A stretch of 61,641 bases of DNA, filler included, from Choristocarpus tenellus KU-1152 (Eukaryota; Protista; Phaeophyceae), in NCBI GenBank assembly GCA_964200185.2. It is 11 parts of 11 records of this genome, joined end to end, with 100 filler letters (N's around TTAATTAATTAA, not from the genome) between each part and the next. Parts side by side here need not be neighbours in the genome. Positions count along the whole stretch, not along the records: positions 58,909 to 61,641 come from CAXNAD020025217.1; 10 more parts are not named here. One strand, written 5' to 3'. Under the pieces are notes generated by a model. The model did not search any database, was not told the DNA's origin, and saw only the letters and a list, made by a program, of their open reading frames with translations. Each line of letters begins with the position of its first letter. Within the stretch, counting starts at the first letter, position 1. Made by a program: the position numbers and the translations under genes. Below, one piece after another: positions 3,401 to 61,641 of this stretch.

Positions 3401-3659
3401 GAGTGAAAGTATCTTAGAGGTTACGAGCTTTTCCTCGTTTGTCCATTTGGGACTTGGCTTCCCGCGGGTTTTTAATGACATTTTACCTACTCCAAAATGT
3501 TTCAAAGTAGTTAAAATTTAAATGTTATGAAAAGGTGTGTCCAGAACAAGGATATTGACAACACCTAACAAACATGATTGCCAAAATTACATCAAAATTG
3601 CAACATTGGATTTTCGCCCCCAAATGGACGCGACTCTACTCTCTAAGATACTTTAACTC
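3401..3659 (-). mobile_element. MITE family A copy
   Basis: Termini GAGTGAAAGTATCTTAGAGG ... CTCTAAGATACTTTAACTC; TSD AGGT on both sides; the interior matches the reverse complement of the 2992 copy. Confidence 0.9.
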
Positions 3660-3755
3660 AGGTCCAAGGCGACACTAGGACTACTGGAAGGATAAACTTT
3701 GCTAGAACAAGGAAACCGGGACACTTGTGGTGGACCAGAGTTGGCAGTTAGAGAA

Positions 3756-4015
3756 GAGTCGAAGTATCTTAGAGGGTAGAGCCGCGTCCATTTGGGGGCC
3801 AAAATCCAATGTTGCCATATTGATGCAATTTTGACTATCGCGTTTGTTAGGAAGGGTCAATATCCTTGTTCAGGACACACTTTTCATAACGTATGCATTT
3901 TACCTACTCCGAAATATTTCGGATTAGGAAAATGCCATAAAAAAAACGGTGGGAAGTCAAGCCCCGAAAACGGACAGACAGGTCAAAACTTCTACCCTCT
4001 AAGATGCTTTCACTC
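3756..4015 (+). mobile_element. MITE family A copy
   Basis: Termini GAGTCGAAGTATCTTAGAGGGTAG ... CTACCCTCTAAGATGCTTTCACTC; TSD AGAA on both sides. Confidence 0.9.
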
Positions 4016-4652
4016 AGAATTGGCATTTTGCGTGGAGAATTCATGTTGGTCTGATTGGTTGAATGCTAAGAAGGTTATTGGGTGCCTGTTGGTACTAAAG
4101 ATAATGGAATTACCTTTGGAGATTTGAGGTTTTATTGGAATGGACGAAGAGTGATCAATTAATTGCCTATACAGATGCTAATTGTGGAAACTGCAAGGAT
4201 AGTAGATTGTCCATCCCTGGTGGTGTTGGAATGTTTGGGGGAGGATGTGTTGATTGGTGGTCTAGGAAGCAGAAAACGGTTACACAGTCTACTACTGAGG
4301 CTGAGTATATTGCACTGTGTGAGTTGGGGAAAGAGGTTACATTCATCAAGCAAGTGTACATGTTCATGTAACCACAATGTAAAAATTAGTTGGTATTAGT
4401 GTTTGAGGACAATGAAGGTGAATAAAGATTTCGCAGAAGACACTATCTGGTGTCAGAACTAAGCACATAGGCGTTAGGTACCACTATGTACGGCAGCTAG
4501 AGAGGGAAAGGAAAGTGAAGAACGGATATGTACCTACGAAGTTCCAACATGCAGATCTTTTTACCAAGGGTTTGTCGAAGGAATAGTTTGATAGGCATGC
4601 GGATACTGTTAAAGTATCCCCAAAATCATCAAAGAGGATAAAGGTGATAAAC

Positions 4653-58760: not shown

Positions 58761-59014
58761 CTCAAAGTATCTGTGAGGGGGTGCCGGCTGTCCATTTGGG
58801 GTCAATTTNNNNNNNNNNNNNNNNNNNNNNNNNNNNNNNNNNNNNNNNNNNNTTAATTAATTAANNNNNNNNNNNNNNNNNNNNNNNNNNNNNNNNNNNN
58901 NNNNNNNNTTTGGTTGCATACGTCTGAAGGATACTGTAAATGTATTTTTCCTGATTTTGGTCCAAATGGACACCCTAGTGTAGACCCCCCCCCCCCTCCC
59001 AGTTACTTTGGGTC
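58759..59014 (+). mobile_element. MITE family B halves on either side of a spacer
   Basis: GGCTCAAAGTATCTG.. (58759-58808) and ..CCCAGTTACTTTGGGTC (58909-59014); the flanks AGA and GTT do not match. Confidence 0.8.
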
Positions 59015-59189
59015 GTTTTCCAATAAAACCGTCATGTAATCATAGTTTACTGGACCTAGCATGTAAACTTACGCCAACCTCTACAAGTAAATTTAGGGCT
59101 GAAGCGTGGTTTTTGGCTTTGCTTTTCTAGTGTACAAGTCTTTTTTGAGCTATGTACCTATTTGTACCTTTTTTTGTCTTATTACTACT

Positions 59190-59775
59190 ACATAAACTTC
59201 ACATTCCCCCGAAGGTTCAATACAGCTACCTCAATCAGCGCCATTTCACAGAACACATTGGAGACCCTATTAAGATGATATCAAAGTCCCTGCTTGCACC
59301 AGACCAAAGGGAGGGGGTTATTTATTTGTTCAAAACGTTTTTTATGAGTAGGTGTAATAATCTGCCTTGGGCATTAGTTTAGATTTTAGCGAGTGTGATA
59401 GACCGTCATCCTCGCTAACGAATCTCAAAGGCATGTTTTTATCGGTTTTTGAAGCAAGTGTGTACATAATCTGCGATTCTTTCCCCGAAATTTCAATACA
59501 CCTACTCAAGTCAGCGCCATTTCACAGAACACAAGACATTGGAGACCCTATTAAGATGGCATGAAGTCTGCCTCTACCAGTCCAAAGGGAGACCTATACG
59601 TTTAATTTTTAGCATCGCTCAGAACTTTTTTAGTGAGTAGGCATTATTACAATCTGTCTCGGACGCGAATAATTTACTAGGTTGTCTAAAAAAGAACTAT
59701 TTCAGCGAGTGTGATAGATTGTCGTGCTCACTAACAAAACTCAAAAACATATTTTATTGGTGTTCTAGCAACGGT
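59190..59775 (+). repeat. Diverged ~280-bp tandem duplication
   Basis: TCAGCGCCATTTCACAGAACACA..TTGGAGACCCTATTAAGATG..AGCGAGTGTGATAGA occurs at ~59235 and ~59511. Confidence 0.85.
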
Positions 59776-60277
59776 GATGATGTGTGCACTTGTTAAAAAA
59801 GGGTAGCCTTGTAAGTAATGGAGGGATGAAGTGATGTTGTGGACATGGGTGTCAGTACGTCGTAGGAAGTCATACTTGCCTATCTATGAGATTGTATCAA
59901 CTACTGTATGGAAGGACTATCTGCCAAGTTATGGAAGGGATGAAATCGTATTTTGGAAATTGGTGTCAATACGTGGTAACAAGTCGTGTTCGTTTAACGA
60001 GGTATGTATCAGCTACGGTATTGAAGGTCTATCCTTTTTTTCTCGCGCTAGGGTTGTGCTTGACAGATTGCTTACATTAACGTATCCAAGAGGACCTACT
60101 CTTCAAGAGGAGCTCGTTGGTCACCCCCCCCCCCTCCCCAACCCCTACTCTGATTTGTCGAGTGGGAGGATATCATTTTAGGCAGTATACACATCATCAC
60201 GATTGGAGGTGTATTTTTTAGAAAGTGTTAAAGACCATGTTTTTGTGTGTGTTTCATTTGTGCTGGATGTATGAACT

Positions 60278-60386
60278 TAGTCTGCCGTATGTTGCACTAG
60301 ACCTATTGTTGTACTTGTCACTGATTATGCATAGTCTGTCGTATGATGCACTAGACCTAATGTTGTACTTGTCACTGATTATGCAT
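60278..60386 (+). repeat. 54-bp tandem repeat x2
   Basis: TAGTCTG(C/T)CGTATG(T/A)TGCACTAGACCTA(T/A)TGTTGTACTTGTCACTGATTATGCA occurs twice. Confidence 0.9.
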
Positions 60387-60810
60387 ACGACAGCGTCCTC
60401 ATTATCGACCCCAATTCATACCAACTAAATACACTACTACTTCTACTCTCATACACCGATGTTTCATCAGATTGAAGGTTTGGAAATAGATATGAATATT
60501 TATATTATTATGCCCTCTGACAATTTGCAGATATGTCAGGGGGGAAACCAATGAAAACTATACATATATATGTTGTTATTAGCCCTAAAGAAATAAAATA
60601 TCCTAAACATAAGAACACAATAAAACATTGTAAGTGTGGAAAACACTAATCTATCAGTTACTTCACCAATATAAAATATTGTACTAATGTCGTCCTTTGC
60701 TTCCCATCTACCTACTCCTGTGCCCCGGGGGGGGGAGCTAGGGAGGCATCCCAACAATCCAATAGACCCCTCCTTGCTCATCACCCTGGTGACTCTAGTT
60801 TGAAGCACAT

Positions 60811-61192
60811 ATTCATGAAAGATATGTAAAACATATGGTTACTGATTTTATGCATACCTTTTTTGAAAAATCTAATATTAATGTTCGATTTAGACCTAGT
60901 TTTTTCCCATTTACTGAACGGTAAGGATGAATAATTTTAAAAGAAGATGAATGTCTTGATATTTTGGGATGTCAAATGATTCATCCTAATGTATTAAAGA
61001 ATGTTTATCTTGATCCAGAGCAATATCAGGGATTTGAATTTGGTCTTGGGGCAGAACGTTTTGCTATATATGATCAAATACGGTATTCATTCATGATTTA
61101 CGCCATTTTTTGAAGGCGATATACGTTGGCTCGATAATTACATTTTTGTAACGTTTGATATTCCAACACTTTTAGGAGGATTGACCAGATGA
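60811..61192 (+). pseudogene. pheS: Bacterial (Rickettsiaceae-like) phenylalanyl-tRNA synthetase alpha subunit, 3' fragment, decayed
   Basis: Reads [30 protein letters not shown] / VRMN / [39 protein letters not shown] / MIKYGIH / DLRHF / [26 protein letters not shown]. These are the Phe[12 protein letters not shown] and motif 3 (GF.FG.G.ER) signatures. The region is intronless and AT-rich with several indels. Confidence 0.93.
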
Positions 61193-61418
61193 GGTTTACT
61201 ATATTTATATATCTAAAAAAATATATATCATGGCTTTAAAAAAATCTAGAGACTGATGCATCTTTAATAAAATAGCAAATACTCTATGTATGGTTTAGAG
61301 GTTGAGGATATTGATGATAGAGTCAGTCAACTAAAAAAGTTGGAAGTTGGAGAAATTTTAGAAGCAGCACCCAGATTCACACAAGTTAAGCTTTGCAACG
61401 TTCAATCTAAATCAGAAA
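61189..61418 (+). pseudogene. pheT: Bacterial phenylalanyl-tRNA synthetase beta subunit, 5' fragment, decayed
   Basis: The ATG overlaps the pheS stop (ATGA at 61189-61192) with AGGAGG just upstream. It reads MRFTI [insertion] SWL*KNLETDASL / KIANTLC / GLEVEDIDDRVSQLKKLEVGEILEAAP..VKLCNVQSK, matching the PheT start MKFTLSWLK.HL.T...GLEVE...VVG.I...KL.LC.V. Confidence 0.9.
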
Positions 61419-61641
61419 GGGTTGGCAGTCGGAGGCAGGAGTGGAGAAGGAGTGGGCAGTATTGAATCAAAGAGGAAACCTGAGGCTGGGGTGGCAGGAC
61501 GATGAGGGCTAGATCAAGACGACCCCCAAGCAAGCTTTCCCGCCCACCCGCCCTTTCACTTGCTCACGACCGACTTGAATCTTAGGGTGGAAGGGGAGGT
61601 CAAATTCGGGCGGGGTAGATGTCTTTTAGCTCAAAGGCACG

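Follow-up and report, generated by a model that had tools for sequence, protein, structure and literature searches.

The DNA considered here lies in a window of 61,641 nucleotides (the whole stretch presented, filler included, along which all positions are counted) built from parts of the genome of Choristocarpus tenellus KU-1152 (GCA_964200185.2). Our analysis bears on positions 58909-61641 of this window (2,733 letters; CAXNAD020025217.1), and this DNA very probably contains an integrated, decayed fragment of the pheS-pheT operon of a Rickettsiaceae bacterium of the Megaira group. The relic lies on the + strand and amounts to ~650 bases in two collinear pieces, 60447-60503 plus 60809-61418: it covers the part of PheS that runs from motif 2 up to its stop codon, then the ATGA overlap between the two genes and ~73 codons of PheT, i.e. 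the 3' 40% of pheS and 9% of pheT as compared with the reference genes. It is of bacterial origin, it is inactivated, it is physically joined to host DNA, and a high-copy mobile repeat of the host transposed into it after its arrival. The features discussed below are the following.

58909-60446, no strand assigned: left host flank, repeat-rich and non-coding, with a very high-copy repeat (58909-59000), direct repeats of ~280-316 nt, a repeat of 114 nt, a 54-nt tandem pair and C-runs
60447-60503, + strand: relic part 1, PheS motif 2 region (SHTPMFHQIEGLEIDMNIY), 78-86% DNA identity to Megaira-group pheS
60496-60503, + strand: left copy of the 8-bp target-site duplication (TSD), ATATTTAT, which aligns to the single reference stretch AATATTCAT
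60504-60808, no strand assigned: inserted host high-copy dispersed repeat, ~305 bp, recognised by word depth and loose ends
60809-61192, + strand: relic part 2, remaining PheS catalytic core and C-terminal tail (PF01409, TIGR00468)
60809-60816, + strand: right copy of the TSD, ATATTCAT, at the start of relic part 2, which aligns to AATATTCAT
61174-61179, + strand: AGGAGG, 9 nt before the pheT ATG, inside the Gly-Gly codons of GGLTR
61189-61418, + strand: relic part 3, N-terminal end of PheT, MRFTI..SWL through ..VQSKSE (~73 codons of the reference)
61419-61641, no strand assigned: right host flank, GC 0.46-0.56, medium- to high-copy repeat, word depth 1e3-1.7e4

Coding content and limits of the relic

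PheS is recognised by profile search in two neighbouring pieces. PF01409 matches 60931-61110 (E 3.9e-10) and 60799-60921 (E 6.7e-6), and the pheS model TIGR00468 matches the same two (E 5.5e-8 and 4.4e-6 respectively); these are fragment scores, far under the full-length cut-off, as expected for pieces. In three-frame translation the PheS peptides follow one another on the + strand at 60811-60921 and 60931-61071, then at 61097-61189 in another frame, and further upstream 60447-60503 encodes SHTPMFHQIEGLEID, the class II motif 2. Motif 2 (FHQIEG; SHTPMFHQIEGL at 60447-60482) and motif 3 (GLGAERFA, near 61045-61068) stand in an order collinear with the references. The PheS tail ends with GGLTR followed by the TGA stop at 61190-61192, and the ATG of pheT (61189-61191) overlaps this stop as ATGA, at 61189-61192. 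From this ATG starts a PheT peptide, MRFTI..., which reads further on MYGLEVEDIDDRVSQLKKLEVGEILEAA. The PheT remnant is weak by hidden Markov model (TIGR00472, E 0.035); it is collinear with residues 1-73 of the reference PheT and displays the pattern MRFTI..SWL..ETDASL..IANTL.M.GLEVEDIDDR... A first-pass annotation made from the sequence alone had proposed a PheS C-terminus and a PheT N-terminus in bacterial operon order, joined by an overlapping stop and start; both the order and the overlap are borne out by the profiles and by the alignment of PheT, and the other features of the sequence listed there are likewise present. A mitochondrial-type phenylalanyl-tRNA synthetase was considered and dropped, since a bacterial PheT N-terminus follows through the ATGA overlap.

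Two other features of this junction have to be read with more caution than was given to them in that annotation. The AGGAGG taken for a Shine-Dalgarno-like site is indeed present at 61174-61179, but as part of conserved Gly-Gly codons: the same GCAGGAGG occupies this place in the Rickettsiaceae references, and there too it encodes Gly-Gly. As for the ATGA overlap, it does not mark the Rickettsiaceae, an ATGA or GTGA overlap being present in nearly all of the 80 alphaproteobacterial loci that we fetched.

The relic was described as strongly AT-rich, which holds: GC ranges from 0.26 to 0.35 across 60809-61408, against 0.42-0.56 in the flanks, and the overall GC of the relic is 32%, against 36-41% in the reference Rickettsiaceae loci. 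Its limits had been set at 60811 and 61418. The right one is exact, the outer junction falling at 61418|61419; the left one is not, as the relic resumes at 60447-60503 and its outer junction lies at ~60446|60447. Beyond both outer junctions the identity to the references is random. Position 60811 corresponds in fact to the right edge of the ~305-bp repeat inserted in the relic, so that, of the host repeat DNA announced on both sides, the right-hand part stands and the left-hand part was the border of this insertion. Outside 60447-61418, no further bacterial fragment was found by tblastx of 58909-61641 against the 80 reference loci.

Alignment to the references also indicates that the first ~200 codons of pheS are missing. 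Because there is no promoter, and because the 5' part of pheS and most of pheT are absent, the fragment could never have made a working enzyme.

Donor lineage

A 60-aa piece of the relic was searched by phmmer against 1.84 billion representative proteins. Among these representatives no match exceeds ~68% local identity; the best full-length match is P0004, whose closest relatives, wherever they carry a name, belong to Rickettsia, Tisiphia, Rickettsiaceae or Rickettsiales. The top match of this search, P0001 (2504 aa), is a repetitive protein matched through a 21-aa repeat, and was discarded as irrelevant. Over ~150 aa of the relic, Rickettsiaceae proteins are 58-65% identical, the proteins retrieved by phmmer being mostly at 40-55%. 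The raw 60-aa piece, used as query for related loci, retrieved no relative, the relic's own 8-mers being mutated; the 80 loci were fetched from GTDB with the intact relative P0231, the best match among the P0004 relatives. The top 32 of these 80 loci are Rickettsiaceae, and the rest other Alphaproteobacteria. The 32 include Candidatus Megaera venefica (L010), Candidatus Megaera polyxenophila (L020), Rickettsia species and many environmental metagenome-assembled genomes (MAGs); one of the Megaera loci comes from the brown alga Nemacystus.

The DNA identity of the relic to loci L001-L032 is 67-73%, and reaches 78-86% for relic part 1 taken alone; relic part 2 is 70-73% identical to L008, L013 and L014 over ~380-400 nt. 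At the protein level, the frame-corrected relic peptide is 67% identical to its closest Megaira-group relatives. To obtain this peptide, each codon of the relic was placed in the frame of the references, with an X at each stop or broken codon, and the result served for the alignment and the tree only; the unbroken pieces were searched separately. In the maximum-likelihood tree (239 columns from the PheS C-terminus and the PheT N-terminus, 32 Rickettsiaceae and 15 other alphaproteobacterial loci), the relic falls inside a Rickettsiaceae clade supported at 100/100, which agrees with the family proposed as donor in the first-pass annotation and with the nesting that was to be looked for. There it joins the MAGs L001, L002, L005, L008, L009 and L017 with a support of 89/75, beside Candidatus Megaera venefica. 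Its end branch measures 0.72, against a median of 0.07. In the approximately unbiased (AU) test, a placement with Rickettsia is disfavoured (p 0.046), as is a placement with the M. polyxenophila clade (p 0.022).

Discrete characters point in the same direction. The relic lacks the 9-residue linker insert of the other sampled alphaproteobacteria and displays a short EVDI-(K/R)MN..DK-WLE linker, like Rickettsiaceae; this short linker and the GGLT(K/R) ending are the only features separating Rickettsiaceae from the other sampled alphaproteobacteria, these signatures being derived from the loci fetched here and not from a curated definition. Both had been given as typical of Rickettsiaceae PheS and keep this value, but the FFEGD.RWL tail given along with them does not: the tail FFE.D.RWL..Y.F is broadly alphaproteobacterial. 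At a finer level, MRFTIS, IANTL, DRV and VQ(T/S)KSE are common to the relic and to the L001/L008/L005 group. Comparison of sequences supports a Rickettsiaceae donor that would belong to the Megaira group.

Two side observations arise from this set of loci and proteins. L011, L014 and L023 are lake MAGs titled 'Rickettsia typhi', yet in the tree they stand inside Megaira-group clades and apart from Rickettsia, and their names look misassigned. Besides, the database entries P0122, P0026, P0036 and P0087, which come from GC-rich contigs of alphaproteobacteria, fuse PheS with PheT by read-through or in scrambled form; in P0122 the PheS C-terminus continues directly into PheT MKTTLAWLK. Such fusion proteins probably result from frameshifts or from errors of gene calling where the two genes overlap as ATGA.

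Decay and inactivation

The stops and frameshifts reported at first sight are found again when the relic is compared with the references. There are at least three premature in-frame stops (TAA 60922, TGA 60928 and TAA 61237) and at least nine indels, four in pheS (net -9 nt near 60932, +4 at 61070-61073, +4 at 61084-61087, -1 after 61104) and five in pheT (+24 at 61200-61223, -1 after 61269, -4 after 61285, -5 after 61361, -1 after 61387). No intact full-length pheS open reading frame (ORF) is present: N-terminal codons are missing, and what is left is broken by stops, by frameshifts and by the 305-bp insert. The PheS remnant is a pseudogene fragment.

The distribution of substitutions differs from that of functional genes. 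Relative to its nearest references, the relic differs at 24%, 15% and 45% of codon positions 1, 2 and 3 respectively, against 7%, 7% and 37-45% for functional pairs within the clade. Of 339 sites without variation among 12 Megaira-group references, 50 (14.7%) are changed in the relic, nearly evenly over codon positions 1, 2 and 3 (17.7%, 11.4% and 22.7%). Per site, GC>AT changes are three times as frequent as AT>GC changes. Such a pattern fits a long neutral decay, of roughly 0.1-0.2 substitutions per site. This might suggest an age of tens of millions of years, a conversion that needs the host mutation rate. The lesions had been invoked against a living contaminant, and this argument holds; to the stops and indels are added the insertion of a repeat and a decay that is evenly spread.

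Concerning the largest indel, the +24 insertion at 61200-61223 consists of the AT-only TATATTTATATATCTAAAAAAATA and directly follows the fifth codon of the pheT relic. This insertion resembles a local slippage or duplication of the adjoining TATAT, and is in frame by chance.

A host repeat inserted in the relic

The two pieces of the relic match the reference in collinear blocks: 60448-60505 corresponds to ~3608-3665 and 60809-61204 and beyond to ~3656-4254, so that the blocks overlap by ~10 nt in reference coordinates. In the alignment, the single AATATTCAT of the reference is matched twice in the relic, by ATATTTAT (60496-60503) and by ATATTCAT (60809-60816). What brackets 60504-60808 is an 8-bp TSD.

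The DNA in between is of another nature. By DNA comparison and by tblastx against the 80 loci, 60504-60808 has no similarity to any reference locus. In the short-read contigs its summed word depth is 7.5e4-3.3e5, against ~25 for unique DNA, with many loose ends located exactly at 60497/60503 and 60810, and many variant letters within 60504-60808. We conclude from the duplicated target at its borders, from the lack of bacterial similarity and from the huge number of copies that this insert is a high-copy mobile repeat of the host, which transposed into the bacterial fragment once the latter had arrived. As to the class of this ~305-bp repeat, our scans found no terminal inverted repeats, no tRNA-like head and no Rfam match, and the ORF that it contains (60539-60808, minus strand), used as protein query, had no match in the protein collection.

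Linkage to host DNA

Two runs of one study, X1 and X2, contain the stretch, and their short-read contigs (Logan) were compared with it. Contig 7 of X1 (752 nt) covers 60735-61486 with 0 mismatches; it crosses the junction between repeat and relic, and also the right outer junction, by 66 nt. On the left, contig 3 of X1 (424 nt, 60106-60528) and contig 11 of X2 (491 nt, 60040-60529), both with 0 mismatches, cross the left outer junction and enter the host repeat by ~25 nt, i.e. by less than the 31 letters of our bridging criterion. In X1 the relic has a depth of 30.9 and the unique flanks one of 21-24; in X2 the values are 2.4-7.4 and 7.4 respectively, the word depths of contigs being rough figures. 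The fragment is thus joined physically to repeat-rich DNA that is not bacterial, at a depth like that of the single-copy flanks. The right junction taken as an exact 24-mer has no match in JGI metagenomes.

Depth and dispersed repeats suggest that the integration is nuclear rather than organellar, and the fragment would presumably have been fixed in the germ line.

Proposed history and alternatives

The history that we favour, and hold for very probable, is as follows. A ~650-bp fragment of a Megaira-group genome became part of a chromosome in a host that is rich in repeats and apparently a eukaryote. The fragment then drifted neutrally, taking up stops and indels and becoming more AT-rich; a high-copy repeat of the host transposed into it, leaving the 8-bp TSD. 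The relic is now functionless, a molecular fossil telling that a bacterium of this kind, or at least its DNA, was once present in cells of the lineage.

Several observations weigh against this history and have to be faced. X1 and X2 come from one study and may be the assembly's own samples, so that their support is not independent, and X2 bridges the right junction by 23 nt only. A second X1 contig (60841-60932), at a depth of 28.7 beside 30.9, differs from the relic by 60869 A>G, 60887 G>A and +TT after 60899; the sample therefore contains the relic in another version, either allelic or paralogous, three differences in ~90 nt being many for alleles. As to the donor, the AU test does not reject a position of the relic outside the 32 Rickettsiaceae loci sampled, as their sister (p 0.31), and the tree comprises neither Anaplasmataceae nor Midichloriaceae nor other Rickettsiales families, which are excluded only indirectly, by the whole-library search.

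How far do these points open the way to other explanations? The AT-rich part could come from a living Rickettsiaceae sequenced along with the host and misjoined to its repeats, the lesions being consensus errors; the contig is short (2.7 kb), repeat-rich and prone to such misjoining, and the reads that support it come from a single study. Yet in two samples the independently built Logan contigs agree letter for letter with the relic and its junctions, at the single-copy depth of the host, a host repeat with its TSD lies inside the gene, and nine indels, three stops and 15% of change at invariant sites go beyond consensus error. A living contaminant or an assembly chimera is very unlikely because of these mismatch-free contigs, of the flank-like depth, of the repeat insertion and of the decay. 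We give scarcely more than passing credit to an insertion in an organelle genome, e.g. mitochondrial, in place of the nucleus: rickettsial DNA in a fern mitogenome is on record (PMC10027690), but the repeats of the flanks, with summed word depths of 1e3-6e5 and many different loose ends, indicate thousands of genomic copies, and the unique parts lie at a uniform low depth of 21-31, when an organelle normally stands far above single-copy depth and lacks such repeats.

The two remaining alternatives accept the relic as real and bear on its source. A donor outside the Megaira group, either an unsampled lineage that branches at the root of Rickettsiaceae or still deeper, or a member of another Rickettsiales family, would suit the sister position retained by the AU test, the 89/75 of the subclade, the end branch of 0.72 and the restricted family sampling of the tree. 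We nevertheless hold it for improbable: the highest identity goes consistently to the L001/L008/L005 group, in protein and in DNA, the states MRFTIS, IANTL, DRV and VQ(T/S)KSE point to this same subclade, and the short linker and the GGLT(K/R) ending are common to all sampled Rickettsiaceae. A Megaira-like relic acquired outside any stable symbiosis, from a transient infection or from bacteria carried by ingested prey or by an associated protist, is to be taken more seriously though still rather unlikely. One fragment of 650 bp cannot separate a long-term symbiont from a passing intracellular bacterium, and Megaira-group bacteria inhabit many protists, possible prey or neighbours (PMC4324946); on the other hand, the DNA of an obligately intracellular Rickettsiaceae would pass into a germ-line nucleus most readily when bacterium and nucleus share one cell, as was argued in the case of Volvox (PMC4324946). 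A resident endosymbiont of the Megaira group would presumably be the source of the fragment.

Comparison with known transfers

The relic is a fresh case of an already documented bacterium-to-host transfer, and no new kind of phenomenon. The closest precedent is Volvox carteri, whose strain EVE carries a Megaira-like insert of ~9 kb in rickettsial gene order, with the four genes 16S, murB, ddlB and ftsQ (PMC4324946). The ddlB-like sequence is interrupted there by a 1,021-bp multicopy element of the host, and the authors infer an endosymbiotic gene transfer, the symbiont itself having later disappeared (PMC4324946). Apart from the Volvox insert, our literature searches found no report of a Megaira-derived insert. 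Both cases share a donor of the Megaira or 'hydra group', a bacterial gene order, truncated genes and a host multicopy element lodged inside a gene (PMC4324946). They differ in that the relic is ~650 bp only, concerns another operon and is heavily decayed, whereas most genes of the Volvox insert were reported without frameshifts or premature stops (PMC4324946), so that this insert looks young. The nearest relatives also contrast with those of the Volvox insert: here they are MAGs on the M. venefica side, not M. polyxenophila.

Wolbachia-to-host nuclear transfers in arthropods and nematodes, e.g. in Drosophila ananassae, are well documented and form a second point of comparison (PMC4558871). 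As in the relic, the DNA of an obligate intracellular Rickettsiales sits in a host chromosome, where it is mostly non-functional, decaying and interrupted by transposable elements; the Wolbachia inserts differ by their Anaplasmataceae donor, by their often very large size and recent date, and by the living symbiont that is usually still present. With respect to a functional Rickettsiaceae pheS-pheT operon (L010, L020, Rickettsia spp. L025-L034), the relic keeps the gene order, the ATGA overlap, the GGAGG in Gly-Gly codons, the short linker, the GGLT(K/R) ending and a PheT start of the MRFT/MKFT type; unlike it, it has partial genes, broken frames, an inserted host repeat and a lower GC.

The relic has no functional consequence for the host. 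Its value lies elsewhere: it is a clean case of Rickettsiaceae DNA in a host chromosome, well supported by the checks made here, and it contains an internal clock, made of the neutral decay and of the later insertion of a host repeat. Where a lineage is without symbiont today, nothing but relics of this type records its former intracellular infections; they can also mislead contamination filters and symbiont screens. Seemingly much older than the Volvox insert, this one widens the evidence that bacteria of the Megaira type have had long associations with non-arthropod hosts. We tentatively consider, as a possibility that is not the likeliest, that the fragment is one survivor of an old and perhaps large Megaira-group transfer into a lineage without known rickettsial partner. 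In that event the insert would be shared by related species, and could be used as a fossil to date a symbiosis with Rickettsiaceae, extinct or cryptic, in a host other than an arthropod. Run X3, from another organism of the same study, contains nothing matching the stretch, repeats included, and is uninformative on such sharing.

The host flanks

No host gene was recognised on 58909-61641, and the ORFs of the left flank have no Pfam match. Tblastx of this flank against the 80 loci gave nothing real, and upstream of 60447 the identity to reference pheS is 25-30%, a random level. Word depth is ~21-24 in the unique parts of the left flank and rises up to 5.9e5 at 58909-59000 (X1), the highest value of all.

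The flank is rich in repeated structures of several kinds. A motif made of a long run of C and then TCCC occurs three times, directly or as its complement: TAGACCCCCCCCCCCCTCCCA at 58981 (within 58909-59000), ACCCCCCCCCCCTCCCCA at 60123 (60123-60140) and GGGGGGGGAGCTA at 60727 (60727-60740). The last of them lies inside the inserted repeat, and the C-run motif may be the shared end of a very abundant family of host repeats. The blocks 59204-59313/59480-59591 and 59383-59449/59699-59764, ~276-316 nt apart and 79-82% identical, form a duplicated unit of ~300 nt at single-copy depth, i.e. a local tandem duplication and not a dispersed repeat. A direct repeat of 114 nt (59813-59921/59926-60033, 74% identity) follows upstream of the relic, then, just before it, a 54-nt tandem pair (60278-60385) in perfect register at 94%. 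Finally, a simple sequence rich in ACT/TCT occupies the 20 nt that immediately precede the left junction, and might have played a part in the capture of the fragment.

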